Shown in pieces: positions 2,056 to 59,784 of a stretch of DNA of 64,000 nucleotides. A program made the translations under genes and the position numbers. The stretch lies in the IMG/VR virus record IMGVR_UViG_3300005965_000002, positions 1-64,000 of that record; one strand, written 5' to 3'. How positions within the stretch are numbered: the stretch's first letter is position 1; each line of letters opens with the position of its first letter. Below the pieces are notes generated by a model. The model ran no database searches. It was not told the DNA's origin and saw only the letters and a program-made list of their open reading frames with translations.

Positions 2056-2140
2056 TGGCGGAGGCGGAGAGATTTGAACTCCCAAGGCCCGAAGGCCGAA
2101 TCCTTTCCAGGGATTTCGCTTACCGTTAGCATACGCCTCC
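2056..2140 (-). tRNA. tRNA-Ser(GGA)
   Basis: Cloverleaf with long variable arm; AATCC-CTGGAAA-GGATT; CCA encoded. Confidence 0.93.
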
Positions 2141-2172
2141 AGTATCTTAATGTATTTTTATAAATCTTTTTT

Positions 2173-2610
2173 TTAAAGCTGTTTTTCCCACTTTTCTACG
2201 GGTCCAGGAATTACTTTGAAAAAAGGATTCACCTCTGGGTTATCTATGTTTTGGTACTTACTATATTTTTCAGGAGATCTTTTTCTAAGTTTATTCTGCA
2301 TTAAATGATTGAACTCATAAAACAGTTGCCCGTGAGTTACCGGAATTTTATCTATAATTTCACTGAAAGGTAGGATCTTAGAGGAGTCGTAATTGTACCC
2401 TCTTCTTGCAGCTTCTTCGTGAATTGAGGTAAGATAGCAGGAAATGTAGGAAAGAGGATCAGGCATAGATTGGAAGCGGATGAGCTGCGAGTGGTTTTTA
2501 TAACCTATCGTTTTACCTTGTAAAACTTTTTGGGCTAGGAGCGCTTCTCGCCAGCAACCTCCTAAACCTTTTTGATCAAGATAGGAAGGATGTATAGACC
2601 AAAGTCTCAT
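2173..2610 (-). CDS. pyrimidine-dimer DNA glycosylase (DenV/endonuclease V-like)
   Basis: MRLWSIHPSYLD..GL..CWREALLAQKVL signature. Confidence 0.85.
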   Translation of the reverse strand: MRLWSIHPSYLDQKGLGGCWREALLAQKVLQGKTIGYKNHSQLIRFQSMPDPLSYISCYLTSIHEEAARRGYNYDSSKILPFSEIIDKIPVTHGQLFYEFNHLMQNKLRKRSPEKYSKYQNIDNPEVNPFFKVIPGPVEKWEKQL

Positions 2611-2924
2611 TTATATCTTACCGTGCTTGTTTTCCCATTCTTCCCGGAACCTTCTAGCGTACTTATTGACCCATTCTTCACAAGCTTCTTCATCTAGGTC
2701 TCTTCCTTCTTGTTCACTTCTGATCCATTTATACTTCTCGATTTCTTCTATTTCATCCTTCATAAACTTGAAATATTTGCTGTCAGGATTAATAGGAGAA
2801 GGAGGGAAGCTGTCGTCCTTACAGCATATACCAGTAGATCCCTTTAAACACGGCATCGATACTCCCCTGTATATTGGTGCCTGAGGGGGGACTTGAACCC
2901 CCACACCTTTCGGCACTAGATCCT

Positions 2925-3716
2925 CTTACTACTCCTAGTTTCCCAGGCCCTCTCGGTTGTAGTCTGGACTATATCTTCACCCTCAGTTTTACCTGTAGGG
3001 GCCTGACGTATAGTCTCTGAGGGGTCACTAAGACTTCCCTGCGGATTGCCGATTATTATCCATACAGATTTTTACTAATAATCTGCTAATAAGTTGGCAG
3101 ACTCATAGTACTGTAGGCTTTACGGGTTTCCCGCATATAGTCAGGTTTCACGCTCCCAATTACTTGAAAGGTGCTCAGGATATGAAGAACATTTCAAAAG
3201 AACTTCTTAAAAAATACTATCTACAGCAAAAACTTACACCCTATAAAATAGGAGAACTCTTTGGAGTTAACCACAAAACTGTAAGGAGCTACTTAAAAAA
3301 ATACCAAATACCCATGCGTACTGCCTCAGAATATAATTTTTTAGCCCGTAAGAGTCATACAAGACCCGACAAAAAAAAGTTACAAAGTAAATTATCCATT
3401 GCCGGGCATTCTGCTTTTCTTTGTGAAGGTTGGCATACAGAAAAAACAAATGCTTTTTATTTCTGTAATACAGATCCCGCCCTCATTCTTTTGGTCCTTA
3501 ATACGCTAAAAAGGATTTATCAAGTTAAAAGAATCGCTATACAAATAATAGCTAAAGAAAAAACAGGAACTAAAAAATTATTTGATATCTTTCCAGAAGC
3601 CTCCTTTATTGTTGAAAAAGATAGAAAAACTCCTATAGTTCGCCTTAGGTGTGGGGGTAAAAATCTTGCTAGAGAAGTAATAGAAAATTCTTACAGAATA
3701 GTTACTTCACTTTACT
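2925..3716 (-). ncRNA. group I intron (792 nt) in anticodon of tRNA-Leu(TAG)
   Basis: Inserted after U34, ends in G; core elements TCAGAGACTA and AAGATATAGTCC present. Confidence 0.9.
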
Positions 3717-3718
3717 AA
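3182..3718 (+). CDS. HTH + LAGLIDADG-like homing endonuclease encoded antisense inside the intron
   Basis: N-terminal HTH (LTPYKIGELFGVNHKTVRSYL), then AFLCEG...F.NTDP.LI motif; ATG at 3182 preferred over TTG at 3164. Confidence 0.65.
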   Translation: MKNISKELLKKYYLQQKLTPYKIGELFGVNHKTVRSYLKKYQIPMRTASEYNFLARKSHTRPDKKKLQSKLSIAGHSAFLCEGWHTEKTNAFYFCNTDPALILLVLNTLKRIYQVKRIAIQIIAKEKTGTKKLFDIFPEASFIVEKDRKTPIVRLRCGGKNLAREVIENSYRIVTSLY

Positions 3719-3802
3719 GTCTAGCGTGTCTGCCGTTCCACCACTCAGGCATGTAAACCTCGTTAACAATATACTTATCTGTTTTTACTATTTAAACTAC
3801 AG

Positions 3803-4072
3803 CTAGCAATATTTGAAATTTTGAATAAGATATGCTATGTCTTTTGCTGCATGGACTTCGTCGGGTCCTTCCGCTCGAACTATGATAACTTCGCCTTGTA
3901 AGAAAGCAGCGGTAAGTATGTAGAGGATATTATTAGTTGGGAATATGTGAGGGTTTGTTTTTCTTCGAAGTGTTACTGTAGATTTGTAATTGCGGCAGGA
4001 AACAACGATATCACGGGAAGGCCTTGCGTGGATCCCTTTATCGTTGTTGATTCGTGCCTCAACCTCAAACAT
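3803..4072 (-). CDS. ptsH: HPr-family phosphocarrier protein
   Basis: GIHARP active-site motif; AEGPDE..A C-terminal motif. Confidence 0.85.
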   Translation of the reverse strand: MFEVEARINNDKGIHARPSRDIVVSCRNYKSTVTLRRKTNPHIFPTNNILYILTAAFLQGEVIIVRAEGPDEVHAAKDIAYLIQNFKYC

Positions 4073-4094
4073 AGAAGTCCTATTTTATTAGTAG

Positions 4095-4167
4095 TGGAGC
4101 TGCGGGGGTTCAAACCCCGGACCTCAACGCTGCCAGCGTCGCGCTCTCCCAACTGAGCTACCGCCCC
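4095..4167 (-). tRNA. tRNA-Ala(GGC)
   Basis: G3:U70 pair; loop CTGGCAG; tail CTA rather than CCA. Confidence 0.88.
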
Positions 4168-4205
4168 GGAATTTATAGTAGGCACAATTATGAATGAATT
4201 ATTAA

Positions 4206-4278
4206 AGCCGGTGGAGGGATTCGAACCCCCGACCAGAGGTTTACAAAACCCCTGCTCTGGCCACTGAGCTACACCGGC
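4206..4278 (-). tRNA. tRNA-Thr(TGT)
   Basis: Cloverleaf; loop TTTGTAA; no CCA. Confidence 0.92.
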
Positions 4279-4328
4279 ATTAAAAATATTCTATTATGGA
4301 AAACACTAAGGAAGGAATCAAGCCTATT

Positions 4329-4550
4329 TTATTTTTTGGACTTTGGCTTAATCAGTCCTTCTTCCATCTTTTTCTGCATTTCTAATTTTCTTTTGGCCGA
4401 TTCTCTTTGTACACGTTTTACAATACACGGCTTTTCGAATCTTCTTCTTTTCTTCATTTCAGAAAGAATGCCGCCATTATCAATTACTTTGGAAAAGCGC
4501 CTGATAGCTTTTTCAATATTTTCGTTATCTCTTATTCTGATGCCATTCAT
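4329..4550 (-). CDS. rpsU: ribosomal protein bS21
   Basis: ENIEKAIRRF...GILSEMKKRRRFEKP signature. Confidence 0.9.
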   Translation of the reverse strand: MNGIRIRDNENIEKAIRRFSKVIDNGGILSEMKKRRRFEKPCIVKRVQRESAKRKLEMQKKMEEGLIKPKSKK

Positions 4551-4575
4551 TTCGTTATTTGCTCCTAATAAAAAA

Positions 4576-4797
4576 AGCGGGGGGTGGGATTCGAACCCAC
4601 AGCGATTATCCCTAACCGGATTATTTTTCAGACGCTAGGGTTTCCGTTATTACGGTTCCTCATCATTGTTCGGGCTATAGCTAGCTCTGTTCAGGCCCGA
4701 ACCCAGGTAGAGGCGTGCAACCGGTCTCGCTTAACCCGGTCAGTTTGTTTTCTCCCGAACCTGGATGGGAGGCGTCTACCAATTCCGCCACCCCCGC
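4576..4797 (-). ncRNA. 222-nt tRNA-like RNA with ~140-nt structured insertion
   Basis: Acceptor GCGGGGG/CCCCCGC, Leu-type D arm, canonical T arm; several hairpins between anticodon-like arm and T arm. Confidence 0.75.
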
Positions 4798-4854
4798 TTA
4801 TTACTATAATATACCAATTCTATGGATGTTTTTAAAAAAATTATTAACAAATAA

Positions 4855-5715
4855 TTAGAATTCTACTAATTGGGTTTTCATTTTTCTTACAGTAGCATGG
4901 TGAAAAAGCTTTCTAATAGCTCTTTCTTTTATCTGTCTTACTCTTTCTCTTGTAAGATTAAGCTTATCTCCAATTTCTTGGAGATTATAGCAATGTCGGT
5001 CATATAGGCCAAAATGAAGCCTACATATCTCTTTTTCTCTTTCAGAGAGTACCTGCAACAACTCAGTTACTAATTTTTGAGTTGTCTCCGCGTGAAGAAA
5101 TTCGTTTGCAGTAATCGTATCTTGATCCTCCAGTGTATCTTTAACGGTTGCGTTTCCTTCCCCGATAGGAGAATCTATTGAGATATAAGGAGTATACATA
5201 GAATGAAGCCATTGGTACTCACTATAGCTATCGATATTAAGCTCAGCCATTATCTCCGAGGGTTCCGGTTCTCTCCTAAGCTCCTGCTGTAGCTTAATAA
5301 TGGCTTTCTTATACTGATCAAAAATAGGCACTCTGTTAATAGGTATCCGAGCAATCCTACTTTGGTTTGCTAACGCTTCTAAAACCTGCTGCCTAATCCA
5401 CCAGACAGCATAAGATATAAATTTATACCCTTTTTTATAATCAAACTTTTTAGCTGCCTTAATAAGTCCGATGTTTCCGATGTTAATCAGATCTTCTAAA
5501 GGCAACCCTTGATGCTGGTAAACACTTACTACATTTATCACAAAACGGAGGTTACCAAGAATTAGTTCTTCCTCGGCCTTTTTATCCCCTTTTGCTATAC
5601 GAATTGCCAGGTTTTTCTCTTGTTCATAGCTAAAATTTTTATATTTACTTATATCACAAAAGTAGATATCTAAAAGAGAATTACCGGTATCTGGTTTACT
5701 TTTTGTATTTTTCAT
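4855..5715 (-). CDS. sigma-70 (RpoD/RpoS-like) factor lacking region 1.1
   Basis: NLRFV, GNIGLIKAAKKFD, FISYAVWWIRQ, TRERVRQI; start moved to ATG 5715 because the upstream part of the track ORF is a tRNA. Confidence 0.92.
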   Translation of the reverse strand: MKNTKSKPDTGNSLLDIYFCDISKYKNFSYEQEKNLAIRIAKGDKKAEEELILGNLRFVINVVSVYQHQGLPLEDLINIGNIGLIKAAKKFDYKKGYKFISYAVWWIRQQVLEALANQSRIARIPINRVPIFDQYKKAIIKLQQELRREPEPSEIMAELNIDSYSEYQWLHSMYTPYISIDSPIGEGNATVKDTLEDQDTITANEFLHAETTQKLVTELLQVLSEREKEICRLHFGLYDRHCYNLQEIGDKLNLTRERVRQIKERAIRKLFHHATVRKMKTQLVEF

Positions 5716-5726
5716 AGTATAAAAAA

Positions 5727-5817
5727 TGGCGGAGGGTGAGGGACTCGAACCCCCAACACCCGAAGGTGACCGGTTTTCAAGACCGGAGCGGTCAACCAAA
5801 TTACGCTTTAACCCTCC
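5727..5817 (-). tRNA. tRNA-Ser(TGA)
   Basis: CCGGT-CTTGAAA-ACCGG, long variable arm, CCA. Confidence 0.92.
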
Positions 5818-6188
5818 TACTGTTTAGTCAAGATTCTCCAATGTTCGAATTTACCAAAAATATTGTTATTAAGGTATGTAGGTAGATTCTTTCTATCGCA
5901 TATAAATAGCAATTGGTATAGATCTTCCGTAAATGCTACTGTAGTTTCAGCGATGCCCTCTATAAAACAAATACCTTTATAGTTTGCTGTTGCCCCACTA
6001 TTAACGTCATACTTTCTTAAAAAATTCAAAAAACCTTCTAAGACTTCATGGTGGAAGCCCTCTTTCTCAAAAAGATAAACAAAAGGGTTTTTCTCCTTTA
6101 ACCTCTTTTCTTCATCTTTAAAGATTTCATAAAGGTCCCTTATATCTTCTTCCGTGTAATAGATAGGCTTAGTTATTGGCTTTTTCAT
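5817..6188 (-). CDS. hypothetical protein
   Basis: ORF track, RBS-like GAGG upstream. Confidence 0.55.
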   Translation of the reverse strand: MKKPITKPIYYTEEDIRDLYEIFKDEEKRLKEKNPFVYLFEKEGFHHEVLEGFLNFLRKYDVNSGATANYKGICFIEGIAETTVAFTEDLYQLLFICDRKNLPTYLNNNIFGKFEHWRILTKQ

Positions 6189-6532
6189 GCCTCGGTTTTA
6201 CCTCGTTATTTATTAGTATAACCTTTGGGTTCGTAACTCCTTGTGATAAATAAGAATAAAACCTTAAGCAGCTGTTGCATTCATACGTGTTAGCTCTTTT
6301 TTAGGCTCTTTTGTAGGAAAAGATCCTATACGAAAAACGTATTTTCCACACCGTGCACAATTTTTATTGACTCTTAGTGGCGTAGTCATGTTTTATCCTT
6401 TCTCTATATCATAATATACTAATTGGGTAAGATTATTTAAATTAGAATATTAGGCAGATATTAGTAATAATCTTCTAATCTTTTCCACTTTATTACTTGT
6501 AATGCTTATATAAATTTTATTGGGGTGAAACA

Positions 6533-7360
6533 ATGTTCGAATATTTACAAGGCTTACATCCTTTGCTTTCCTATTCTTTATCCACTCTCCTTGTAATAGC
6601 TGCGGTAATTATTTCTCTTTTTGCTAAAATAAAATGGGATAAACAATCTTTATCAATAGGCGGTACAGATGACGGAGATAAAAAGAATAATATTAAAGAA
6701 GCTAATCAAAAATCGAGTACCGTTAAGGTTCAGGAAAGAAATTGTATTGACTGCGTTTTTTATGTACTAGCATTAAGAGAGAAGTTTGAAATAGAATACG
6801 TGGCCGTAAAAGATAGCGTGTTAAAGGATCAGATGAATTTTGCTGAACAGAAGTTAAGCGAAGTCAAGACCACTGCTACCACTGAGTTTACTAAAAAATT
6901 GAAAGATCTAGAGCTTAATAAAAACGGAGATATTAGCATAGAAGAGCAATTTTTCAGGGAGACTACTCGTTACGAACTCTTCTGTAGTGTACTAAGAGAA
7001 GTAATGCATATTATTAAAGATGAAATAAGAAGATCCTTTAAGGAAAACGGTTATTTCGATTTTCAAGAAGGTGAGTTTTCTAACTACTTACGTAATAAAA
7101 TGGACTACTTAGAAAGTTTAGCTCTCAACCATTTTTCATCTCGTTATCCTTCATATAATAAAATTTTACCTCTTAGTGAGATCAAAGAAATTTACTTGGA
7201 TAACCGAAAAGAGCTAGAATCGACTTTAAGAGAAGTTTTTACAATTAGTAGAAGTATTAAGACTAAAGCGGATACAGAGGTTAAGAATAAAAAAGAAGAA
7301 TTCAAGAAAAGAATTGATAGCTTTATAAATAAAAGAAATAAAGCCCAGGATGAGGATTGA
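6533..7360 (+). CDS. hypothetical membrane-anchored helical protein
   Basis: N-terminal hydrophobic segment; preceded by the TAATAATCnnnTAAT motif. Confidence 0.65.
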   Translation: MFEYLQGLHPLLSYSLSTLLVIAAVIISLFAKIKWDKQSLSIGGTDDGDKKNNIKEANQKSSTVKVQERNCIDCVFYVLALREKFEIEYVAVKDSVLKDQMNFAEQKLSEVKTTATTEFTKKLKDLELNKNGDISIEEQFFRETTRYELFCSVLREVMHIIKDEIRRSFKENGYFDFQEGEFSNYLRNKMDYLESLALNHFSSRYPSYNKILPLSEIKEIYLDNRKELESTLREVFTISRSIKTKADTEVKNKKEEFKKRIDSFINKRNKAQDED

Positions 7361-7413
7361 ACTCACGACCCCTACCTTACCAAGGTAGTACTCTACCACT
7401 GAGCTACCTGGGC
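7342..7413 (-). tRNA. tRNA-Thr(GGT)
   Basis: Loop TTGGTAA; no CCA. Confidence 0.92.
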
Positions 7414-7417
7414 GTAA

Positions 7418-7495
7418 TGGGGTGACCGAGGGGAATTAAACCCCCAACCACCAGAGCCACAATCTGGTGCTCTACCCGGTTGAGCTACGGCCACC
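7418..7495 (-). tRNA. tRNA-His(GTG)
   Basis: Loop TTGTGGC; G-1:C73; CCA. Confidence 0.92.
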
Positions 7496-7836
7496 ATAAA
7501 TTCATTTATGCAGATTTTAAAATATTTGACAGATAGGAAATAATGTCTGTGCTCTCGTCAGCTCTGTTGCGGGGTAGCTTATGCAGTTTACTTAAAGCTT
7601 TCTCAACCGTCTCCCGGTCAATATCCATCGGCAGCTCATTTATCTTCTCAGGAGATAGTATTTTTACCTTGTAGTGTCCGTTTCCATTTGATGCGAATAA
7701 TACCTTTATGAGCTTACCCTGGTTGTAAAAAAATTCCTGGTAATTAGGTTTTGACATTCTTCGTCTCCGTTTGTATGATAGACGATAATAGAATGCCTAT
7801 TAAGAGATTATTAGTTGTGAACAAAATAACGAAAAA

Positions 7837-7912
7837 TGGCAGACCCGAAGGGACTCGAACCCCCAACCACTGGTTTTGGAGACCAGGACTCTACCAATTG
7901 AGCTACGGGCCT
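7837..7912 (-). tRNA. tRNA-Trp(CCA)
   Basis: CTGGT-CTCCAAA-ACCAG; CCA. Confidence 0.93.
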
Positions 7913-7914
7913 GT

Positions 7915-8811
7915 TTAATATCCTATTAATTTTCTCATTAAGTGTTTTCTATATCTGTTCATGATTTTGTGCCTACCCGCAGTTCTCCCTACGACTGTAT
8001 CTTCCGGTGCCCTCTCGTGGAGAAAGTGCTTAATGTATGTGTTTGTTATCAGCCTACACTCAACACCAGCAAACATAGAATCTACCCCAAAGGCCACGTC
8101 CTCATGGCCCCAGGATTTGAATTCAGTGTCATCGAAGTAGAATAGATCATCGTTTATTCTTCTTATTGCTTTTAAGCCTGGAACGTCTATTGCAAAGTTA
8201 CATGACCAAGTAATTCTACCTGTAAGGATAAGATCCATCTTCTCGTTAAATGAAGTCATTTTATTATACAGATCTACTATTCCTGAGATATCCCGATAAT
8301 CTTTATAATCGAGCTCGCGCTCAAAATAAAGGTTATCGTAAAGATTGTCGCTGTTCGAGTTCAAAAAAGAAGAGGGCATCTTATCTACTGGCATATAGCA
8401 ACAGGACTCATCGTCTTTTAAGAACTCTTCAAAATCTTCAGGCCGTTGTATATGCTCTCTCATTCCGTAGAAGCCCACACACTCACTACCATACTCTGAG
8501 AAAGCTTTCTCATAATTTTCTATAAAGTGTTTATTCGCTGGGAAAGAATCTCCGTCGAAGAATACCAGATAATTATTACCCATGGTGAGTGCTTTGTTGA
8601 TACCTATGTTTCTCCCCCGGGCTCTTCCTACTGATTTTTCATTACGGATCACTGTCACAAGGGTATCCACAATTGGGTAGAAAGGTTCTATGGAACCATC
8701 ATCTACGACAATGATGTTTCGAGGTAGTACTGTTTGCTCACAGAGTTTTGCTATTGCATAATTAACAAAATTTTGCTGATCTCGGCAAAGTATAATTACT
8801 GATGTGCTCAT
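7915..8811 (-). CDS. glycosyltransferase family 2
   Basis: SVIIL, IIVVDDGS, RNIG, FFDGD, WGHED motifs. Confidence 0.85.
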   Translation of the reverse strand: MSTSVIILCRDQQNFVNYAIAKLCEQTVLPRNIIVVDDGSIEPFYPIVDTLVTVIRNEKSVGRARGRNIGINKALTMGNNYLVFFDGDSFPANKHFIENYEKAFSEYGSECVGFYGMREHIQRPEDFEEFLKDDESCCYMPVDKMPSSFLNSNSDNLYDNLYFERELDYKDYRDISGIVDLYNKMTSFNEKMDLILTGRITWSCNFAIDVPGLKAIRRINDDLFYFDDTEFKSWGHEDVAFGVDSMFAGVECRLITNTYIKHFLHERAPEDTVVGRTAGRHKIMNRYRKHLMRKLIGY

Positions 8812-9010
8812 TATTTTACCAATTTAGCTTCTTTTCTAAGTACCTTTTTTCCATTATCATAGTCGTACTTAATTATATAGTCTTCATCGTTAGCTGGGCA
8901 GCTTACAAGTATATGATCACCAAAATCTCCTAAGATAGTATCTTCCTCAGTGAAGATATAACCAGTGTCTGGATCCTGTGGATATTTGGAATAGTCTAGT
9001 TTAAAACAAT

Positions 9011-11026: not shown

Positions 11027-11285
11027 TTATACCTCATATGATTTGTCGTATCAATTCATTAAGTTCTGGCTCACCATACCAAAAAAAATATTGGTAATTT
11101 TCATAACTGATGTATATTATTCCTACTTCTTTTTTTATGTGTTTTCTCAAATGATCTATTACAGAGGGAGTACACATAGATACTCTTAAAGAGGCTATAA
11201 TGTGGCTCGGGAATTCTTTTATAGCATCCCGGACTCTCCTGTATATTTTTTCTTTTTCTGTAATATATCGATTCATAAGAAATAA

Positions 11286-11361
11286 TGGTGGAGCCGGTCG
11301 GGATCGAACCGACGACCGCTAGCTTGCAAAGCTAGTGCTCTCCCAATTGAGCTACGGCCCC
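11286..11361 (-). tRNA. tRNA-Ala(TGC)
   Basis: Loop TTTGCAA; G3:U70; CCA. Confidence 0.94.
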
Positions 11362-11645
11362 TTATTCAGAAAAATTGGCAGAATTCTTTATATGTTTTTT
11401 AGTTTCTATTCTATTGACTAATATCCCAATGAGGTTTGTAAAAGAATTTACCTCAGTAGCTTCAACGTAATAGCAGCCCCCGCCGAGAGCCGGTTCAATG
11501 TTGAAAAGGATACCCATCCATAAGCCGGTTACAGGGTCCTGGGCAATCTCTCTAACGAGCCATCCTTTAGGTATAAGGCTAAGGACGCTTTCTTCTTGAT
11601 TTTTGGGTTTGCTTTTAAAAAATGAAAACATAGGCATTTAATTGT

Positions 11646-11731
11646 TGGTGCTCCGGGGGAGACTCGAACTCCCAAGGGCAGTGCCCGCCAGATTTTGAAT
11701 CTGGTGCGTTTACCAATTCCACCACCGGAGC
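11646..11731 (-). tRNA. tRNA-Leu(CAA)
   Basis: CCAGA-TTCAAAA-TCTGG; CCA. Confidence 0.93.
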
Positions 11732-13174: not shown

Positions 13175-13268
13175 AAGTCCACAGTGTCTACCATTCCACC
13201 ACCCGAGCATGTCAAAGATCATCTCATATGAATATACTCCTTTGATTATTCTAATTAAAGTAAAAAAG

Positions 13269-13931: not shown

Positions 13932-13940
13932 ATGTAAAAA

Positions 13941-52752: not shown

Positions 52753-52828
52753 TGGCACGCCCGCCAGGACTCGAACCTGGAACCCTGGGATTAGAAATCC
52801 CATGCTATCTCCATTTAGCTACGGGCGC
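52753..52828 (-). tRNA. tRNA-Arg(TCT)
   Basis: TGGGA-TTTCTAA-TCCCA; CCA. Confidence 0.92.
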
Positions 52829-53618
52829 ATTAATACCTCTTCAATATACCCACGAATTACTTTAGGAGTAATCCGTATCTGTTTTTTACGATTTGCTTCC
52901 TCGAATTCTTCTTTCGACATTTCTACGAATTCCCAGATTTTCATCATATAGAAGTCTTGTTCTGGGGAAAGAAATTTAATGTTTTTCTTTTGTATCTCCC
53001 ATCTCCAGCAGTGCTCATTTACCATTATTTTTCGAGCTAATGCTACCGATCTTCTTTTTTTCGGAGATGTTTTTGATTTCATGTATTTTTGTACATTATA
53101 CGGCTTCCGACTTGTTCTATGGGTTTTACACATAAAGTGCAAACTCCCTGGTATTCAACATACTAACCACCTGAAGCTGTGATGAATACCTCCCGGTCAT
53201 AATCTTCAGAACATTCAGTTGAACAGACGTATTCAAATTCTGCGGTTTTCATAAATTTTAGCGGAAGATTAATTACCGGGTGAGGTATGGGTTTTCCGCA
53301 ATGAATACATCTGGAAGCGTATTTCTTTAAACGCTTCAGTGGTGGTTTTCTTATGAATAAATTATTAAACCATTTCATCCAAGAGCCCTCGGTTTTTCAG
53401 CTCTTCATTAATCATGTCAACAATAGAATCAAGAACATGCTCAGGGGTTCCATATAATTCATCAAGATTGTCACTCTCTGACTGTTCTATTAATTTAGAG
53501 CGTACATCAGAGATCACGCTTTTATATTTGTCGCCATTAAGAGCATCTTTGAATGCTTGTTCTTCGGCATACATATCAAATTTTAATATCAGCTTAGGCA
53601 TACTAACTCCAAGGGCTT

Positions 53619-53670
53619 CTGACGTACTCCCACGACTGAAGTCGTGGGCTTTCCCGCTCACTCTCGTAAA
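53619..53670 (-). mobile_element. 52-nt palindromic IS200/IS605-end-like element, copy 2
   Basis: Identical to 40597-40648. Confidence 0.75.
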
Positions 53671-53868
53671 AGGCGAGCAATACATAGCTGCCTTTTGGAT
53701 ACCACTGTAACTAAGGATTTCAGAGATTTTAATTGCTGTAATTTCGGCCTGATTTTTTCCTGCTTCTGTAAGCTCAATCTTGTAATCCGGGACTGTAAGA
53801 TACACGTCTTTATCAACATTCCCTGTTGATTGGCCGTGACGTACTAAAAAAATTTTACGGGGTTTCAT
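53665..53868 (-). pseudogene. histidine phosphatase (phosphoglycerate-mutase family), truncated at the palindromic element
   Basis: IFLVRHGQS..N, LT..G..QA, YCSPFTR, then element-derived sequence. Confidence 0.75.
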
Positions 53869-53931
53869 CTGATACCTTTATGCTTCGCGTAGGGCCTATT
53901 ACAATATACTTATCAGAAGCTATTTTTTAAA

Positions 53932-54543
53932 TCAATAAACGAATTCTTCCCAAGGAGTTTGGGAATAGATTTTCCAGATAAAAGAGTCTAATTCAGCTGG
54001 GGTCATTTTCCTTTTATGGGACTCCAGGGCAAATTCTTTTTCTTTTTCGAGATAATCTTTCGAATTTTTAGGAGGATCCCACAGCATATATTTGATTATA
54101 TGGGTATCTATTATGGCTAATTCTATAGCTCCAAGATTTCTAAGGAAATGGCTGGATGTTTTCATACCGAAGCCGTTAACGTTTTTACAAAGCCACTCCC
54201 TTACTTCTACCCAAGGCCTTTCGCTTCTAATCAAGTCATAGATTTGGTTAAATTGAGATTTGGCCAGCAGGAGCCTGTTAGCTTTAACCTTATGGAATCG
54301 GGTAGTCCAAATCAATGAATCCACCTGCTTGAGGCTCAGGGTATTGCAATAAAAACCACTCGAAATGATGTTACTAATAGCAATACAATTACTCTTGTAG
54401 GTAGTTTGGGGTGTCATGAGACAAAAGCACATATCATAGAAGATCTGTTCTTTTGACTTCAATATTCTGAAGGAATTTATGACTTTTTTTAAGAATTTTC
54501 TATCAGCATCTGGAATCGAGTAGCGAGAATTCTTAGTATACAC
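53932..54543 (-). CDS. 8-oxoguanine DNA glycosylase/AP lyase (Ogg-like)
   Basis: FCL.TPQ, RF..VKA, REWL..V.G.G.K.SSHFLRN.G, AIIDTHI. Confidence 0.88.
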   Translation of the reverse strand: MYTKNSRYSIPDADRKFLKKVINSFRILKSKEQIFYDMCFCLMTPQTTYKSNCIAISNIISSGFYCNTLSLKQVDSLIWTTRFHKVKANRLLLAKSQFNQIYDLIRSERPWVEVREWLCKNVNGFGMKTSSHFLRNLGAIELAIIDTHIIKYMLWDPPKNSKDYLEKEKEFALESHKRKMTPAELDSFIWKIYSQTPWEEFVY

Positions 54544-54593
54544 TCTAATCTCCGGTTTATACCTAAATACTATTTTGAAAAAGTTATTTAAAA

Positions 54594-54666
54594 TAGCCCA
54601 GCAGGGACTCGAACCCCGAGACCAGGATTAGGAATCCTGTGCTTTGTCCTGTTAAGCGACTGGGCC
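54594..54666 (-). tRNA. tRNA-Arg(CCT)
   Basis: CAGGA-TTCCTAA-TCCTG; no CCA. Confidence 0.88.
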
Positions 54667-55482
54667 TTTTTTCTTTTTCAGTATAAACCCGATTATCCAG
54701 GTCATTACTCCGCTACTAATTATAAACCCGATAATGGTTTTCCAGTTGTTTTCCCAAAATCTGCCAGCTATAAAAGTAGGATTTACAGCCACTTTTATAG
54801 TGTCCGTATATGTTACGATATCATAGGTTTCATCCGAGAATCCTTCTCTTTTCAAGATGCATACTATTTTCATTTTTAATATATTTGTGCCACCGCTTAC
54901 AGGAGTAATCCCCCATTTCCATACGGTAGGCTTATCAAATTTTCGTAACTGAGTGGATGAGCTATAAGTGGTATCAATGCGGAACCCGTCACCAGATAAT
55001 TCAGCTTTCATTGTCTGGCTTACATCGATAATTTTTAGAGTATATTTTTCTCCTAAACCTTCAGTTAGTGCCTCAGAAATTTTATTATCGATTCTGAGCT
55101 TAACTTGATACTCTTTTCCCATTTTAATTGTATCTGGTACCTCGTAAGCTATTGCTCCAGAGGTAAGTTGAGACTGAAGGACCCAGGCGGCATCTCTATG
55201 AGAAAAATCCTCTCCGGCTGCTGCTGGAGAGGATCCTTCAATCTGTATAGTTCTTAAATTGATACGATCTAATTGTTTGGTTTCTTCTTCCCAGCTTGAA
55301 GGAGCTGGGGGAGGCATCCCAGCCCAATAGTCTTCTTCGTACTCATAGGTATCGGGGGAGGGTGTCATCTCTTGATAATCTGGTGAGATTACCGGAGGGG
55401 GTGCTGATGTATCATCTTTAAAAGTTTTTTTACCTCCACAAGAAACAATAGTAGCCAATAAGATTAAAAACATCCACTTCAT
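54652..55482 (-). CDS. putative lipoprotein with C-terminal transmembrane segment
   Basis: Lipobox-like IVSC; hydrophobic C-terminus followed by KKKK. Confidence 0.65.
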   Translation of the reverse strand: MKWMFLILLATIVSCGGKKTFKDDTSAPPPVISPDYQEMTPSPDTYEYEEDYWAGMPPPAPSSWEEETKQLDRINLRTIQIEGSSPAAAGEDFSHRDAAWVLQSQLTSGAIAYEVPDTIKMGKEYQVKLRIDNKISEALTEGLGEKYTLKIIDVSQTMKAELSGDGFRIDTTYSSSTQLRKFDKPTVWKWGITPVSGGTNILKMKIVCILKREGFSDETYDIVTYTDTIKVAVNPTFIAGRFWENNWKTIIGFIISSGVMTWIIGFILKKKKGPVA

Positions 55483-55496
55483 AATTACTCCTTTAA

Positions 55497-55568
55497 AGCC
55501 GGTGAAGGGACTCGGACCCCCAACCTACGCATTACGGGTGCGTTGCTCTACCGTTGAGCTACACCGGC
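55497..55568 (-). tRNA. tRNA-Thr(CGT), with C33
   Basis: ACGCA-CCCGTAA-TGCGT; no CCA. Confidence 0.85.
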
Positions 55569-56269
55569 TAGTATCCTAATTCAGATGCTGCTTGAACAAT
55601 TGGATCTGGCATCTTGATCTGCGTATAGGATGTCTTATTTTTATATACCTGGAGTTTCTCTATTTTCTCCCCCACAAAATCAGAGATTCTTTTTAATTCG
55701 TGATCCTGGTTTTCTATAAAATCTTCCATTTTTACCACTATCGATCTTTCTGGGTAAGGAACAGATTTTATAATGTCGTATTGAAGCTTCCAGCTCCATA
55801 AGCTTATATTTGCGTTTTTTAATCCACCAAACGCTCCAAAATGATTTAACAGCTTATCGCTATAGTGAGGGGCATTTCTCATTGGATTGCGAAACCAGAG
55901 TACATAGTAAAACTCAGGATATAGCCTAGTAAGCCAGGGATAGATAAAAGTTGTTTCTGGAAGCTTCCACCCTTTTTTTGGAGATTTATCGAGTAGAATG
56001 TCATGCAGATACCGGCGAATATCCTCGGCATCTTTAGCAGTGCAGCCTTCTATTGCTGGTTGTAGATTATAGTGATTGCCATCAAATTTAATTTGACTGA
56101 TAAACCTTTTGGCAATATCATACATTAAAGCATAGGGTTCCTTATCATAGCTTACATTCCTAAACTGAGGGGAACCCATAAAAAATCCGCTACTAGAAAA
56201 AGTTTTTGCTATTAATCTAGAAGCAGAAGATCCACGACCAATGATTGTTACAATCTTAGGACTCATCAC
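55568..56269 (-). CDS. sulfotransferase-family protein
   Basis: IIGRGSSASR, GWKLPET, FRNP, VKMEDF. Confidence 0.7.
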   Translation of the reverse strand: MMSPKIVTIIGRGSSASRLIAKTFSSSGFFMGSPQFRNVSYDKEPYALMYDIAKRFISQIKFDGNHYNLQPAIEGCTAKDAEDIRRYLHDILLDKSPKKGWKLPETTFIYPWLTRLYPEFYYVLWFRNPMRNAPHYSDKLLNHFGAFGGLKNANISLWSWKLQYDIIKSVPYPERSIVVKMEDFIENQDHELKRISDFVGEKIEKLQVYKNKTSYTQIKMPDPIVQAASELGY

Positions 56270-56489
56270 CTTCCTCTACTTCGTTACAGGCTATGCTTGC
56301 GTTTGCCCACATGATCGCTTCGCGTAGCTTTTCTATCGCTTTGTTAGTTTCCTCGCCTTCGGGGCAAAGCTTGACAATCTTTTTCGCTAGTCTTTTTCCT
56401 GCAGTCCTGAGAGTTTCATAACGATCGGGTTGGTCTCCACCCGGTCTGTGGTAGCTAAAAATGTTTTCGATTTGGTCTTTTGTAATCAT
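56256..56489 (-). CDS. Acb2/Tad1-like small helical protein
   Basis: FSYH.P..Q..RY..LR...CP...AIEKLREAIMWANASIA; start at ATG 56489. Confidence 0.65.
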   Translation of the reverse strand: MITKDQIENIFSYHRPGGDQPDRYETLRTAGKRLAKKIVKLCPEGEETNKAIEKLREAIMWANASIACNEVEEGDES

Positions 56490-56509
56490 CTTATCTTCTC
56501 CATAAAAAT

Positions 56510-56584
56510 TGGAGCAGGAGACGAGACTCGAACTCGCAACAATCACCTTGGAAGGGTGGGGCTCTACCATTGAGCTACTCCTGC
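56510..56584 (-). tRNA. tRNA-Gly(TCC)
   Basis: Loop CTTCCAA; U73; CCA. Confidence 0.92.
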
Positions 56585-57508
56585 ATATATTTAAATGTTT
56601 TTGGTTTTCTCTATATTTTCACTAATAAATTGCCTGACTTTTTTCCTAGATTTTTTCTTTTCCTTTATTTTCTACAAACTCTTCGCCTCTTTCCCAGGCT
56701 GCTATCTTAGCGTCTGCCTCTGATTCATGCATAATTATAAGAGACCCGTCCTTGCAGTCGAAACCAACAGGACCTGAAATAGAAACTTCTTTGAAATCGT
56801 AAATCACCAGATATTGCTTAGAATCCTCTGTTATCAATATCGCTGGTGTCTCGTCTAATCTTAACTTTCCTTTATAGCCTTTTTCCAGTAAATGACCAAC
56901 GGCTTTAGAAAGTATCTTCAGTTTTTTTGGAGAGGCTAGTCCCTCATAACTGAGGCGCAGAAACTCCTTAAAATTTTCCTTCGTTAGTAGTCCTGACTCA
57001 AGAGCTTCAAAAATAGCATCCGATGCATTTTCTACTGTGAGCTCAGGATCCAAATCCGGGCTATCCTCAAAGTTTATCATTCTCAGCTCAACTCTTTAAA
57101 CAAACTTATATAATTGTCTGCGATTTCCCTGTCTGACTTCTTCTCTTCTTCGCTGAGATTTTCATACTCGGAAAGCATTTGCCTTACCCAGCGGGCGACC
57201 TTTTCCTCGGGGATCAAAATAGCACCAAAAGAAGTAGGCTCACATTGCTTAAAAAGGTACTTCATTTAGTGAGACCATACATCATGGCAGTGCCTAGCGA
57301 TCTCTTCCTTAGGATCCTTATCTTTTTTAGAAAAAGGATTAATTTTCTCAGGGTTTACTGGTAATTCCCCAGCTTCGGCATTTTCTCTAATCTGGCGTAA
57401 GCTCCAGGGTTCGCTGTCTCTCATAATATGTTTTACCAATATTTTGATATTAAAGAATTATTTCACTGATTAACTACTAATATTCTGCAATTTAAAAAGG
57501 AGTATCCT

Positions 57509-57922
57509 ATGCATAGAATATCAGAATATTTAGACTCTCTTTCTAATATATTAGAGAGCAAAGGATTTTTAAAGCAGGCTGAGCATATTGATATGCTTAC
57601 TAACACAGTAGATGGGTTATGGCTCTGCTCATGCTGTCAGAAGCCCACGGTAAATAGTATAGAAGATCGTTACATGGTAAACGATGATATATGGAGAGAG
57701 CTGGGTTTCCCGGGCCAAGTAGATGGCATTCCTGATGACTACTTTTTATGTTGGAGCTGTCTTATTATGGCAGTTTCGAAAAAGTTAGGTAGAGGGCTTT
57801 CATCTGCCGATTTTGCTCAATATATGCAGTACCCTATAAACGTAAATAATCCGAATATAATTGATCTTATGAGGGGAGAAATGGACCAGGTAGGACTCGA
57901 ACCTACGACTGCTCGATTATGA
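57509..57922 (+). CDS. hypothetical protein with the shared N-terminal motif
   Basis: RBS AAGGAG; LDSLSNILESKGFLKQAEHIDML. Confidence 0.7.
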   Translation: MHRISEYLDSLSNILESKGFLKQAEHIDMLTNTVDGLWLCSCCQKPTVNSIEDRYMVNDDIWRELGFPGQVDGIPDDYFLCWSCLIMAVSKKLGRGLSSADFAQYMQYPINVNNPNIIDLMRGEMDQVGLEPTTARL

Positions 57923-57955
57923 GTCGAGAACTCTAACCAACTGAGTTACTGGTCC
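57882..57955 (-). tRNA. tRNA with CAT anticodon (Ile2 likely, Met possible)
   Basis: CTCGA-CTCATAA-TCGAG; no CCA; its leader contains ATA twice. Confidence 0.88.
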
Positions 57956-58145
57956 TAAAAATTCTCAAAATTTTCTGCAAAGTGTATTCTTTCATTTTGA
58001 CGGCATTCTCCCAATCTTAAAGAGACTGATTTGCCAAATTCTTTTCTTTTCTTTTAATATAATAGCACTTGTCTGTGTCAGGGCAATATATGCACATTAC
58101 ATCTGTAGTACTCATTATAACCTCTTTGAGCTACTTGATAAATAG

Positions 58146-58270
58146 AGCCCCGGGTTGGATTCGAACCAACGATGGAGGTCTTCAGTCACCCAGCAAACAG
58201 CCTCTCAACTGGTCGCGAGTTCAATTTAACCACTGGGTATTGTCGCCGTGTGCCTTCTCGGCTCCAGGGC
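58146..58270 (-). ncRNA. 125-nt tRNA-like RNA (acceptor and T arm, long helix replacing anticodon arm)
   Basis: GCCCTGG/CCGGGGC-U; GTTGG-TTCGAAT-CCAAC; ACCCAGT/GCTGGGT helix. Confidence 0.65.
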
Positions 58271-58569
58271 ATTCTGTGTCTATTTTAACATACTTTTTAG
58301 TATCTTAGTTTTAAAACGTATCTTTTCTTTTACTAAGTTTTTTCAAGCACTTCTTTGCTGTTTTTTCGAGCTCTGTAATAACAAGAACACAATCGTTGAC
58401 TTCGCCCTCGTAATAAAAATGAACAAACCCACCCTCTTTGTCATCACTTAGTTTAGAGGCTATAAGTTTCATTTTATGGTCTAAATAGGTGTTTTCCATG
58501 TTTCTCCTTTCTCTTACCATAAAAATATAGTAAAAGATAAGGAGATAATTAATGAGGATTGTGTTAGAA

Positions 58570-58644
58570 TGGAGCAGGGGACGGGAGTCGAACCCGCAAC
58601 AACCACCTTGGCAAGGTGGAGCTCTACCGTTGAGCTACCCCTGC
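58570..58644 (-). tRNA. tRNA-Gly(GCC)
   Basis: CCACC-TTGCCAA-GGTGG; CCA. Confidence 0.93.
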
Positions 58645-58645
58645 T

Positions 58646-59104
58646 TTATCTGAGATTATAGAAGTAAAGTAGACCAGCCCACCCCGAGGGTAAACACCTA
58701 GGTGCTTCTTCTAACTCTTCTCCATATTTTACCGCCATTTCAAGGAAGTACTTAGCATGGAAAAAGGCCTCTACCATAGGTCTCGTGTGTTTAAGCCAAT
58801 TTTTGTTATGCTTGTCTTGGAAGGTTTTGCCTGAAGCACCTTCCTTAAGTATCTCTTCTAAAAAACAGTTAGGCTTTACTCCCTCAGGTGCTAAGCTGTT
58901 AAGCTTTTCAATAATCTCTTTGGTAATCCCTTGGATGTAATAAACCTTAAAAGATTGGTGGTAGAACCGGTATATATGGTCTTCATAAAACCAATGACCG
59001 TTTATCTTCTCTAACAGTTCTTTAAGCTCCTTGTGATTACGCTTTATATTTTCTAAAAGCGCGTTAGCTTGCTTATGCATGTTCTCAAAATAATTATGAT
59101 CCAT
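58646..59104 (-). CDS. conserved hypothetical protein
   Basis: YRFYHQSFKVY...EAFFHAKYFL...LPSGWA. Confidence 0.7.
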   Translation of the reverse strand: MDHNYFENMHKQANALLENIKRNHKELKELLEKINGHWFYEDHIYRFYHQSFKVYYIQGITKEIIEKLNSLAPEGVKPNCFLEEILKEGASGKTFQDKHNKNWLKHTRPMVEAFFHAKYFLEMAVKYGEELEEAPRCLPSGWAGLLYFYNLR

Positions 59105-59162
59105 AAAAACCCTCCTTCTTTAATATAACTATTTACAGAAAGGTTTTTTGAAAATAATAAAA

Positions 59163-59234
59163 TAGCCCGTACCGGAGTCGAACCGATGCGTCCTGGCTGA
59201 GAACCAGGTATCCTGACCACTAGATGAACGGGCC
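59163..59234 (-). tRNA. tRNA-Glu(CTC)
   Basis: CCTGG-TTCTCAG-CCAGG; no CCA. Confidence 0.9.
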
Positions 59235-59239
59235 ATTAA

Positions 59240-59313
59240 TAGAGGTAGGGGGATTCGAACCCCCGATCTACGCCGTGAAAGGGCGTTGAGTTTGACCACT
59301 ACTCTATACCTCC
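59240..59313 (-). tRNA. tRNA-Glu(TTC)
   Basis: ACGCC-CTTTCAC-GGCGT; no CCA. Confidence 0.9.
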
Positions 59314-59318
59314 ATATA

Positions 59319-59400
59319 TGGAGCTGGGAGAGGGTGTTTCACCCACACAGAGCTCATTCCCCTGAGCAAGGGGTCCGCTGCCTATTTCTGGAGTCCCAGC
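59319..59400 (-). ncRNA. 82-nt tRNA-like RNA ending UCCA
   Basis: GCTGGGA/TCCCAGC-TCCA; non-canonical T loop TGAAACA; CCCCT-TGCTC-AGGGG arm. Confidence 0.65.
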
Positions 59401-59592
59401 ATAGTAACTAATCTAAGGTGCGTTCTTATGCTTATTCCTGTCAAAGAGCTTCGGCTTCCACTGAGTGCAGTGATCTGCGCACCTAACGTAGATAGCCTGT
59501 TTTTTGGCCGTGCACACACGATAGCCCTGTCTTATGGATCTACACCCATTAGCACAGTTGTAACAGCTTTCGTCATGTATTTTAGTGGCCAT

Positions 59593-59784
59593 AAAAAAAA
59601 CCCTGTCAGTTTTAGTCCTGACAGGGTTTTATTCGACTTATGCAATAGATACCCCATCAGGACATTATAGTACCCTCGCCTTCTCCTTCTCTTCCTTCTA
59701 TCCTGATGGTAGTCGTAGCAATCATAATTTTTCCTTAAATTGGTTCGTTATCTTTAATATACCAATTAACGACCGAAAATTCAA
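59593..59784 (-). promoter_or_regulatory. attenuator 5: promoter TTGAAT-N17-TATATT, leader ORF 59725-59657, terminator 59630-59593 (boxA-like at 59450-59439)
   Basis: Leader MIATTTIRIEGREGEGEGTIMS; GTCCTGATGGGGT pairs over 13 bp with ACCCTGTCAGGAC. Confidence 0.9.

Follow-up and report, generated by a model that had tools for sequence, protein, structure and literature searches.

Analysis of a giant phage from a salt lake revealed that each of five groups of its tRNA genes is preceded by a short leader open reading frame and an intrinsic transcription terminator, and that each leader is rich in codons read by the tRNAs of its own group. The arrangement is best explained as a set of ribosome-mediated (leader-peptide) transcription attenuators, and the phage probably makes a given tRNA set only when ribosomes run short of it. 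We consider this reading likely, although it rests on sequence alone, without RNA or ribosome data for this phage. We examined a 64,000-nucleotide window (positions 1 to 64,000 of IMG/VR record IMGVR_UViG_3300005965_000002) together with the 258-kb contig to which it belongs, which represents about 55% of the genome. The five cassettes and all tRNA genes found lie on the minus strand of the window.

An initial annotation had described five cassettes of promoter, leader ORF, terminator and tRNA block, and all five were confirmed. Each promoter consists of a sigma-70-type -35 element followed by 17 nt and TATATT. These are located at 14687..14715 (cassette 1, TTGAAT), 24276..24304 (cassette 2, TTGAAT), 41283..41311 (cassette 3, TTGTAT), 48609..48637 (cassette 4, TTGAAA, with TG) and 59756..59784 (cassette 5, TTGAAT, with TG). 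Four were recovered with a 17-nt spacer by a promoter scan, while the promoter of cassette 3, whose -35 element is too weak for the scan, was read by eye. The sequence GGTATATTA occurs 10 times on the minus strand of the contig, 8 of them in the tRNA region. The leader ORFs comprise 38, 31, 26, 27 and 22 codons, and each has an AGGAG-, GAGGA- or AAGGA-like Shine-Dalgarno site 5-10 nt upstream. Scanning for intrinsic terminators identified 20 on the minus strand of the contig, and the five cassette terminators have the longest stems in the window. No similar cassette lies elsewhere in the contig.

We next defined the tRNA content of the blocks. ARAGORN identified 37 tRNA genes, all at 2056-59314 on the minus strand, and two further tRNA-Leu genes, (UAA) and (UAG), were found to carry group I introns. 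The initial annotation had assigned a Ser(UGA) tRNA, and this proved right, since the gene at 5727-5817 that ARAGORN called Ala-CGC folds with a CUUGAAA anticodon loop. Block 1 (2056..14204) encodes Cys, Leu CAG, Tyr, Leu GAG, Leu UAA (group I intron), Leu CAA, Ala UGC, Trp, His, Thr GGU, Ser UGA, Thr UGU, Ala GGC, Leu UAG (group I intron) and Ser GGA, interspersed with protein genes (topoisomerase I, sigma factor and others). Block 2 (21613..24033) encodes Phe GAA, two Asp GUC and Ser GCU. Block 3 (34939..41082) encodes two Asn GUU, Gln CUG, Gln UUG, Pro GGG and Pro UGG, while an amber-suppressor tRNA at 30968-31041 has its own promoter. Block 4 (45564..48125) encodes Lys UUU, Lys CUU, Arg ACG, Val UAC and Arg CCG, and block 5 (52753..59314) encodes Glu UUC, Glu CUC, Gly GCC, a CAU tRNA (probably Ile2), Gly UCC, Thr CGU, Arg CCU and Arg UCU. 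The "operons" of the initial annotation are mixed tRNA and protein blocks of 2.4-12 kb. At least two further promoters (4807 and 31052) drive RNA genes directly, and a recurrent TCTTTGACA motif lies before many tRNAs. The attenuators are therefore not the only control.

After determining the content of the blocks, we compared it with the codons of the leaders. Leader 1 (14540..14656) is rich in S/T/L/A/H/W/Y/C, and 27 of its 37 codons are readable by block 1 tRNAs. Leader 2 (24147..24242) is rich in I/F/D/S, with Ser as AGY in the sensing part. Leader 3 (41182..41262) contains ten consecutive N/Q/P codons and is the only leader that ends in TAG. Leader 4 (48486..48569) has a V/K/R core in which Arg is CGC/CGT in the sensing part. 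Leader 5 (59657..59725) has a run of 11 codons (AGG ATA GAA GGA AGA GAA GGA GAA GGC GAG GGT), all read by block 5 tRNAs, plus ACG. In total, 27, 10, 10, 11 and 14 codons of leaders 1 to 5 match the anticodons of their own blocks, against 0-6 for the other blocks. The true leader-to-block assignment scores 72 and is the best of 120 permutations, for which the next best score is 57 and the mean is 25.4. Leaders 1, 3, 4 and 5 are each the single maximum for own-codon run length among 1,602 short ORFs in the contig. Moreover, the isoacceptor-level details claimed in the initial annotation (Ser TCN versus AGY, Arg CGY versus AGR, and ACG only in leader 5) all hold, and resampling of synonymous codons gave 66/104 observed matches against 58.3 +/- 2.3 (p about 0.0014). 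However, the match is not complete. Leader 2 has seven Ile ATC/ATT codons, but no tRNA-Ile(GAU) gene was found in block 2 or anywhere in the 258-kb contig, and GTC in leader 4 and ACT/ACC in leader 5 also have no tRNA in their own block.

Since any leader-peptide attenuator responds to charged-tRNA supply, we considered whether the cassettes instead sense amino-acid starvation in general (charged tRNA of any origin) and regulate mixed operons whose protein products matter most, with the tRNAs as passengers. In keeping with this view, the blocks hold many protein genes, including topoisomerase, sigma factor, CCA-adding enzyme and glycosyltransferases, and in four lineages a conserved small ORF directly follows the cassette 1 terminator. 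However, codon choice follows the isoacceptor genes present in the block and not just the amino acids, the amino-acid sets are those of the block's tRNAs, and the block proteins annotated by Pfam show no amino-acid biosynthetic function. Furthermore, the first genes after the terminators are tRNAs or a tiny ORF followed by tRNAs. We therefore regard this alternative as unlikely.

To investigate whether the leaders could form mutually exclusive structures, we folded the cassette RNAs. The terminators are located at 14474..14510 (cassette 1, a 10-bp GC-rich stem plus T run), 24081..24125 (cassette 2, a 14-bp stem), 41122..41159 (cassette 3), 48427..48462 (cassette 4, 13 pairs) and 59593..59630 (cassette 5, 13 pairs). 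Near the 3' end of each leader lies an antiterminator strand (region 2). In leader 1 this is GCTGGGAGG at 14549..14557, a near copy of the terminator's 3' arm. The corresponding strands are CCCGGGCGGGGGTCTC at 24153..24170 in leader 2, GGTTCGTTGGGAGGG at 41197..41211 in leader 3, CCACAGGGGGG at 48506..48516 in leader 4 and TCCTGATGGGGT at 59651..59662 in leader 5, where it overlaps the stop codon. Leader 5 also contains a region 1 (CCATCAGGA, 59701..59709) that is the exact complement of the start of region 2. The full-length leader RNAs whose terminator was captured folded as a leader-internal hairpin plus the terminator, and all five full-length folds contained the terminator hairpin. In RNAs cut before the 3' arm, the leader's 3' end paired with the terminator's 5' arm in four of five cassettes. 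The folds thus correspond to the classical 1:2 / 2:3 / 3:4 attenuator geometry.

We then placed a ribosome footprint at different positions on the leaders. With the footprint on the block-matched codons the 5' arm was sequestered 63-84% of the time, and with the footprint on the last codons this fell to 2-40% in four cassettes. The contrast for leader 1 was weak (66% to 47%). In cassette 4 the antiterminator strand lies 18-28 nt before the stop, so a terminating ribosome would not cover it fully. Duplexes between the leader tail and the terminator's 5' arm, calculated for these five cassettes and the seven from relatives described below, averaged -17.3 kcal/mol for own pairs against -11.7 for pairs of different cassette types, and all 12 lay in the lowest 3% of shuffles. 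The distance from stop codon to terminator was 22-34 nt in all 12 cassettes.

Five diverged relatives (R2 to R6; flanking proteins 30-70% identical to those of the present phage, R1) carry seven further cassettes at syntenic places: cassettes 5, 4 and 1 in R2, cassette 4 in R3, and cassette 1 in R4, R5 and R6. Several relatives of the same phage clade have no tRNAs at these places. Between R1 and R3, flanking genes are 68-71% identical in DNA and the promoter plus 5' UTR 55%, while the leader-to-terminator segment is 89% identical, with 25/25 third positions identical against 137/292 in the neighbouring gene. Between R1 and R2, 11/11 third positions in the leader core are identical against 84/175 in the neighbouring gene. 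Compensatory pairs in the terminators were found at 6 of 14 for cassette 1 and 3 of 13 for cassette 4. Region 2 changes together with the arms, being CTGGGAGG in R1, GGGCGGG in R4 and R5 (GGGTGGG in R2) and TTAGCGGGGCT in R6, and the cassette 4 antiterminator strand likewise co-varies with both terminator arms in R2. In R3 the tRNA follows the terminator at once.

The frozen synonymous sites could also come from RNA-structure constraint, and part of the leader is base-paired. We therefore considered that the short ORFs might not be translated sensors, the conserved leader being instead an RNA-only switch (direct tRNA binding as in T-boxes, or a protein-bound element) or simply a terminator that insulates modules, with an incidental codon match. 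Nevertheless, no Rfam family, T-box included, matched the cassettes, and all 12 keep a Shine-Dalgarno site, an ATG, an open frame and a stop before the terminator. The cassette 1 leaders of different lineages differ in residue order but keep S/T/L/A/H/Y/C, and four of the five keep W, which structure alone does not explain. In addition, the promoter lies upstream of the terminator rather than after it, and the own-codon runs of leaders 1, 3, 4 and 5 are unique among the short ORFs. We therefore regard this alternative as very unlikely. The same comparison bears on the possibility that the ORFs encode functional micropeptides (for example small membrane peptides) and that the terminators are ordinary gene ends. 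Although leader 1 and its relatives are hydrophobic and rich in S/T/L/A, peptide sequence is not conserved while composition is, the five leaders have entirely different compositions, each equal to its block's tRNA set, and the peptide tails are dictated by the antiterminator strand. We consider this possibility very unlikely.

Leader codon sets also partly track tRNA gene content across lineages. In four of five lineages the leucine codons in the leader track which tRNA-Leu genes are present: CTG and CTC occur only where Leu CAG and GAG genes exist (R1 and R2), CTT occurs only in R5, which alone has Leu AAG, and R4 uses only TTA, TTG and CTA and has only the UAA, CAA and UAG genes. Similarly, ACG and Thr CGU are both present in R1 and both absent in R2. 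Absences in relatives rest on only 13-17 kb of sequence downstream of each cassette, and R6 fits poorly, as its leader has TGC, three AGC and CTC without matching tRNA genes in a 20-kb contig that carries an insertion.

The closest known systems are the leader-peptide attenuators of amino-acid biosynthetic operons (trpL, hisL, leuL, pheL, and the multivalent thrL and ilvL/ivbL), which combine a promoter, a short translated ORF enriched in regulatory codons, mutually exclusive 1:2 / 2:3 / 3:4 hairpins and an intrinsic terminator just after the leader. Leaders sensing several amino acids occur in thr (Thr, Ile) and ilv (Ile, Val, Leu). In the phage the controlled genes are tRNAs (with passenger proteins) rather than biosynthetic enzymes, up to eight amino acids are sensed per leader, synonymous codons are chosen to fit the isoacceptor genes downstream, and several differently addressed attenuators sit in series in one genome. 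Attenuation of pheST by the pheM leader in E. coli likewise controls a component of the translation apparatus in response to charged-tRNA supply, but it controls a synthetase, uses one amino acid and is bacterial. T-box riboswitches (RF00230) also make a terminator/antiterminator decision addressed to one tRNA species by codon-anticodon reading, and control translation-related genes. However, they bind uncharged tRNA directly, need no ribosome, and have a specifier loop and a conserved T-box sequence, whereas the phage cassettes have translated-ORF features. Finally, tRNA gene clusters of large phages (T4, T5, jumbo phages and megaphages) also contain many tRNAs mixed with small ORFs and homing endonucleases, and are thought to offset codon-usage differences, host tRNA loss or anticodon nucleases. 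Leader-peptide attenuation of such clusters was not found in full-text literature searches, and here the tRNAs are split into five codon-addressed modules over 58 kb.

Every computational test that we could run favored leader-peptide attenuation, as the initial annotation had proposed. In the working that we propose, host RNA polymerase starts at the sigma-70-type promoter and a ribosome loads on the leader ORF. If the ribosome reads the leader without delay, it reaches the last codons or the stop and covers region 2, or lets it re-pair with region 1, whereupon the GC-rich terminator forms and transcription ends 22-34 nt after the stop. If instead the ribosome stalls on a sensing codon because the cognate charged tRNA is scarce, region 2 stays free and pairs with the terminator's 5' arm, and polymerase reads through into the block. 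That the leaders are translated and that stalling causes read-through are inferences, as is the cause of the shortage in nature, and the suggestion in the initial annotation that the phage senses anticodon-nuclease defence is inference only. With few other strong terminators inside the blocks, each attenuator probably also acts as a conditional insulator for transcripts arriving from the module upstream. Since the sensing codons are those read by the tRNAs of that block, down to the isoacceptor, each cassette would on this reading be a negative-feedback, on-demand switch for one codon-addressed tRNA module.

The window covers bases 1-64000 of a 258,580-bp IMG/VR virus record that derives from a hypersaline-lake metagenome and was judged about 55% complete. 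We first established its tRNA content. ARAGORN identified 37 tRNA genes, all on the minus strand between 2056 and 59314 and none elsewhere in the contig. When introns were allowed, two more genes were added, tRNA-Leu(UAA) at 12355-13208 and tRNA-Leu(UAG) at 2875-3750 (both minus strand), each of which is split by a group I intron of about 770-790 nt that is detected by Rfam (RF00028); the first intron holds an HNH endonuclease ORF at 12536-13222. The gene at 5727-5817 was labeled tRNA-Ala(CGC) by ARAGORN with an odd fold and was scored weakly as tRNA-Sec by Rfam. However, manual folding revealed a CCGGT/ACCGG stem with a CTTGAAA loop and a long variable arm, so it is a class II tRNA-Ser(UGA), as the initial annotation had stated. 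The tRNAs are spread among protein genes that include topoisomerase I, a sigma-70 family protein (4855-5799), a CCA-adding enzyme (16277-17830), glycosyltransferases and a methylase, and the tRNA region also encodes an NAD synthase interrupted by an intein with a LAGLIDADG domain (61976-63991). Less regular tRNA-like elements were also found. A gene at 4575-4840 (minus strand) has a good acceptor stem, a Leu-type D arm and a T arm, but carries a 147-nt insert in the anticodon region; it ends in a T run and is not called as tmRNA. A second expanded tRNA-like element lies in block 5 (58140-58270, minus strand), a block being the tRNA-bearing stretch behind a cassette. In block 4 there is an orphan tRNA 3' half ending in CCA (45940-45990, minus strand) next to an antisense HNH ORF (46052-46843). 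We considered whether this might be part of a split tRNA-Val(GAC) at 45.9-46.9 kb, but no 5' half was found.

Examination of the minus strand confirmed the five cassettes described in the initial annotation. Each consists, in order, of a TTG(A/T)A(T/A)-N17-TATATT promoter, a Shine-Dalgarno-like site, an ATG-started ORF, 22-34 nt of spacer, and a GC-rich hairpin with a stem of 9-14 bp followed by a T run. The leader ORFs are of 38, 31, 26, 27 and 22 codons and lie at 14656-14540, 24242-24147, 41262-41182, 48569-48486 and 59725-59657, respectively. Four of the promoters were listed with a 17-nt spacer by a promoter scan. The extended -10 word GGTATATTA occurs ten times on the minus strand of the contig, eight of them in the tRNA region. 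A terminator scan found only 20 terminators on that strand, and the five cassette terminators have the longest stems in the window. No comparable unit of promoter, short ORF and terminator lies elsewhere in the contig. An ordinary operon-end terminator followed by the next promoter is excluded, because here the promoter and ORF come before the terminator.

We next asked whether the match between leader codons and block anticodons was more than chance. Leader codons readable by the tRNAs of each block were counted using standard wobble rules, which gave 27, 10, 10, 11 and 14 for a leader's own block and 0-6 for any other block. The true assignment scores 72, as compared to 57 for the next best of 120 permutations and a mean of 25.4. 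We also compared the leaders against all 1,602 ATG-started ORFs of 15-60 codons in the six frames of the contig. Leaders 1, 3, 4 and 5 are each the single maximum for the longest run of own-block codons (15, 10, 6 and 11 codons), although leader 2 is not, with a run of 4 that is equalled by 15 ORFs. When the peptides were kept and synonymous codons were redrawn from the phage's codon usage, 58.3 +/- 2.3 matches were obtained against 66 observed (p about 0.0014), and the fit therefore holds at the isoacceptor level. The isoacceptor details claimed in the initial annotation check out: Ser is TCN in leader 1, whose block has GGA and UGA, and AGY in the sensing part of leader 2, whose block has GCU; Arg is CGC/CGT in leader 4 (ACG) and AGG/AGA in leader 5 (CCU, UCU); and ACG occurs only in leader 5 (CGU). 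In addition, leader 1 uses CTA, TTG, CTG, TTA and CTC, and block 1 holds all five matching tRNA-Leu genes. The single CAU tRNA of block 5 has C4 and C5 in the acceptor stem; if these are TilS determinants, as seems possible, it would be a tRNA-Ile2 reading the two ATA codons, although we regard this only as a lead. There are exceptions. Leader 2 has seven ATC/ATT codons, yet no tRNA-Ile(GAU) was found by ARAGORN with introns, by Rfam at E up to 1, or by a T-loop scan, and the enrichment of this leader is accordingly weaker; since about 45% of the genome is missing, absence is not proven. Likewise, GTC in leader 4 and ACT/ACC in leader 5 have no tRNA in their own block.

To determine whether the leaders could form alternative structures, we folded the leader RNAs. 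The full-length RNAs whose terminator was captured (leaders 1, 3 and 5) fold into a leader-internal hairpin plus the terminator, and all five full-length folds contain the terminator hairpin. In leader 5 the segment CCATCAGGA in codons 6-8 is the exact 9-nt complement of TCCTGATGG at the stop codon, and pairing of an upstream segment within the sensing codons (region 1) with the end of the leader (region 2) was also seen in the consensus fold of cassette 4. In RNAs cut just before the terminator's 3' arm, which is the state in which the decision is made, the minimum-energy fold pairs the leader's 3' end with the terminator's 5' arm in cassettes 2-5. This is the trp/his/thr geometry, with region 1 in the sensing codons, region 2 at the leader's end, and regions 3 and 4 forming the terminator. 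A 29-nt ribosome footprint was then slid along each leader. The 5' arm is sequestered 63-84% of the time while the A site is on the block-matched codons, and this falls to 2-40% on the last codons in cassettes 2-5. For cassettes 2-5 and for relatives, the simulations are consistent with a ribosome at the end of the leader masking region 2 and a stalled ribosome leaving it free, although leader 1 shows only a weak contrast (66% to 47%) and in cassette 4 region 2 lies 18-28 nt before the stop. We also considered an RNA-only switch of the T-box type. However, no Rfam family, including the T-box and known leaders, matches the cassettes, even at E up to 1.

We then searched for the cassettes in related phages. 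Megablast of the cassette 5 region against GenBank phages found nothing, a shared promoter/5' UTR pattern in IMG/VR gave only four chance hits inside an unrelated gene, two leader-core patterns in IMG/VR gave no hits, and a homologue search with the small ORF after cassette 5 found nothing. Contigs of four DNA runs cover cassette 5 at about 94-95% identity. Using a patatin-like gene upstream of cassette 5, we reached a 202-kb metagenome contig (lineage R2; loci L019, L024, L027 and L031) whose proteins are 30-54% identical to those of the window. At the syntenic place R2 has a promoter, a 22-codon leader with the core I-G-I-E-G-R-E-G-E-G-R and a terminator, behind which lie tRNA-Glu UUC, CAU, Gly GCC, Gly UCC, Arg UCU and a second CAU; it has neither Thr(CGU) nor an ACG codon. 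A further 7 kb on, R2 has a cassette 4 homologue with a V/K/R leader ahead of Lys CUU, Lys UUU, Val UAC, Val GAC and Arg ACG. A second lineage (R3, flanking proteins 63% identical) has a cassette 4 leader identical to the window's apart from a 9-nt deletion, followed at once by tRNA-Lys. Topoisomerase homologues led to cassette 1 homologues in R2 and in three further lineages, R4, R5 and R6. In total, the promoter and the short ORF with its ribosome-binding site and start codon are present in five of five cassettes in the window and seven of seven in relatives. In contrast, several other relatives found through the CCA-adding enzyme and through topoisomerase have no tRNAs nearby. A complete 253-kb relative (IMGVR_UViG_3300017917_002466) has 37 tRNAs in one compact 8-kb array, which is preceded by a TTGACA-N17-TATATT promoter, a 41-codon ORF using 19 different amino acids and a terminator (locus L010:2900-3300); since the composition is not significant (p = 0.07) and the pairing geometry differs, this case was inconclusive. 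Relatives also carry hairpin-forming mini-introns of 25-28 nt right after the anticodon in tRNA-Arg(UCU), Tyr, Ser(UGA) and Ala(UGC) (L024:4395-4497, L028:5360-5460, L031:8702-8813, L031:15416-15526 and L036:15690-15800, loci of relatives), whereas direct comparison showed the window's orthologues of Arg(UCU), Tyr and Ser(UGA) to be uninterrupted.

The pattern of conservation was then examined. Between the window and R3, the flanking genes are 68-71% identical in DNA and the promoter plus 5' UTR 55%, while the stretch from the leader ATG to the terminator is 89% identical. All 25 aligned third codon positions of the leader are identical, against 137 of 292 in the neighboring gene. Against R2, 11 of 11 third positions in the leader core are identical, against 84 of 175 in the neighboring gene. 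Synonymous sites are therefore under strong constraint, as expected if codon identity or pairing is what matters. RNAalifold revealed compensatory double changes in 6 of 14 terminator pairs for cassette 1 and 3 of 13 for cassette 4. The antiterminator strand changes along with the arms: it is CTGGGAGG in the window, GGGCGGG in R4 and R5 (GGGTGGG in R2), and TTAGCGGGGCT in R6, each being a near copy of that lineage's own 3' arm. In cassette 4 an A:T:A triplet across region 2, the 5' arm and the 3' arm becomes T:A:T in R2. Leader-tail to 5'-arm duplexes average -17.3 kcal/mol for own pairs, as compared to -11.7 +/- 3.0 for pairs of different cassette types, and all twelve are in the lowest 3% of shuffles, seven of them at 0 of 300.

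We also investigated whether leaders track tRNA content. The five cassette 1 leaders cannot be aligned residue by residue, yet all are built from S, T, L, A, H, Y and C, and four of the five include W. A functional micropeptide is unlikely, because composition is conserved while sequence is not, and the peptide tails are set by the antiterminator strand. The Leu codons provide the clearest case. CTG and CTC appear only in the window and R2, the two lineages with Leu(CAG) and Leu(GAG); CTT appears only in R5, the only lineage with Leu(AAG); and R4 uses only TTA, TTG and CTA and has only Leu(UAA), (CAA) and (UAG). R6 has no Trp codon and no tRNA-Trp was seen, but it also has TGC, three AGC and CTC codons without matching genes, in a contig of only 20 kb that carries a resolvase insertion between the cassette and the first tRNA. 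Absences rest on 13-17 kb of downstream sequence, and the lineages are not independent. We regard these data as suggestive support rather than proof. A small basic ORF (47-57 aa, motif KR-C-S-A-ARR) directly follows the cassette 1 terminator (14315-14458, minus strand; L031:7504-7677, L033:3678-3830 and L036:8475-8618 in relatives) and, from reading the translated sequences without a formal alignment, appears conserved in four lineages.

The attenuators are one layer of control among others. The blocks, of 2.4-12 kb, mix tRNAs with protein genes, and the phage has its own sigma factor. Promoters of the same type sit directly in front of the tRNA-like gene with the 147-nt insert (4807; TTTAAA-N17-TATATT) and of an amber-suppressor tRNA with anticodon CUA (31052). 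The latter tRNA (30968-31041) lies directly behind a GGTATATTA promoter with no leader. Leader 3, in whose block it lies, is the only leader ending in TAG (41182-41184), and the next in-frame stop is 15 nt further on, 7 nt before the terminator arm. However, the contig shows no sign of TAG recoding, as reading TAG as sense lengthens ORFs less than the control stop codons do. The motif TCTTTGACA (or TCTTTGATA) recurs 2-90 nt upstream of many tRNA genes in this phage and its relatives (window 14298, 13217, 41114 and 59446; L031:7770; L033:3839 and 4223; L036:8613; L019:13440; L010:3286), and its variable distance, sometimes only 2 nt, argues against a simple -35 box. Because few strong terminators lie inside the blocks, we infer that each attenuator probably also decides whether transcripts from the module upstream continue.

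Taken together, the anatomy, statistics, folding and comparative data support ribosome-mediated attenuation well, and, although translation of the leaders and read-through on stalling are inferred in the absence of RNA data, we consider this reading likely with good confidence. The mechanism class is classical. New here are its use on tRNA genes, leaders addressing up to eight amino acids at isoacceptor resolution, and several differently addressed units in series in a virus. Full-text literature searches for leader-peptide attenuation of tRNA genes, in phages or bacteria, found nothing relevant, and the region upstream of E. coli pheV holds only a promoter. A more far-reaching possibility, which we judge about as likely as not, is that a clade of giant phages carries a modular tRNA homeostat, in which several attenuators in series each read out the cell's decoding capacity for one subset of codons at isoacceptor resolution and switch on only the tRNA module that repairs the shortage. 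This would let the phage detect and counter host tRNA cleavage or decay (anticodon nucleases, stress-induced tRNA loss) codon by codon, and shut the module off again once its own tRNAs have accumulated. That ecological reading, the sensing of tRNA depletion by host defenses, is at present no more than plausible.

How phage tRNA genes are regulated is largely unknown, and they are usually treated as constitutively expressed helpers. Attenuators whose leader peptides list the codons of the tRNAs behind them would offer compact, codon-addressed sensors of tRNA availability for synthetic biology, and would give a sequence signature (promoter, codon-biased short ORF, terminator mimic) for finding such control in other large phages. 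They would be the first case of leader-peptide attenuation feeding back on tRNA supply itself, would give a directly testable link between phage tRNA sets and host tRNA-targeting defenses, and would show that a virus measures the host's decoding capacity codon by codon.
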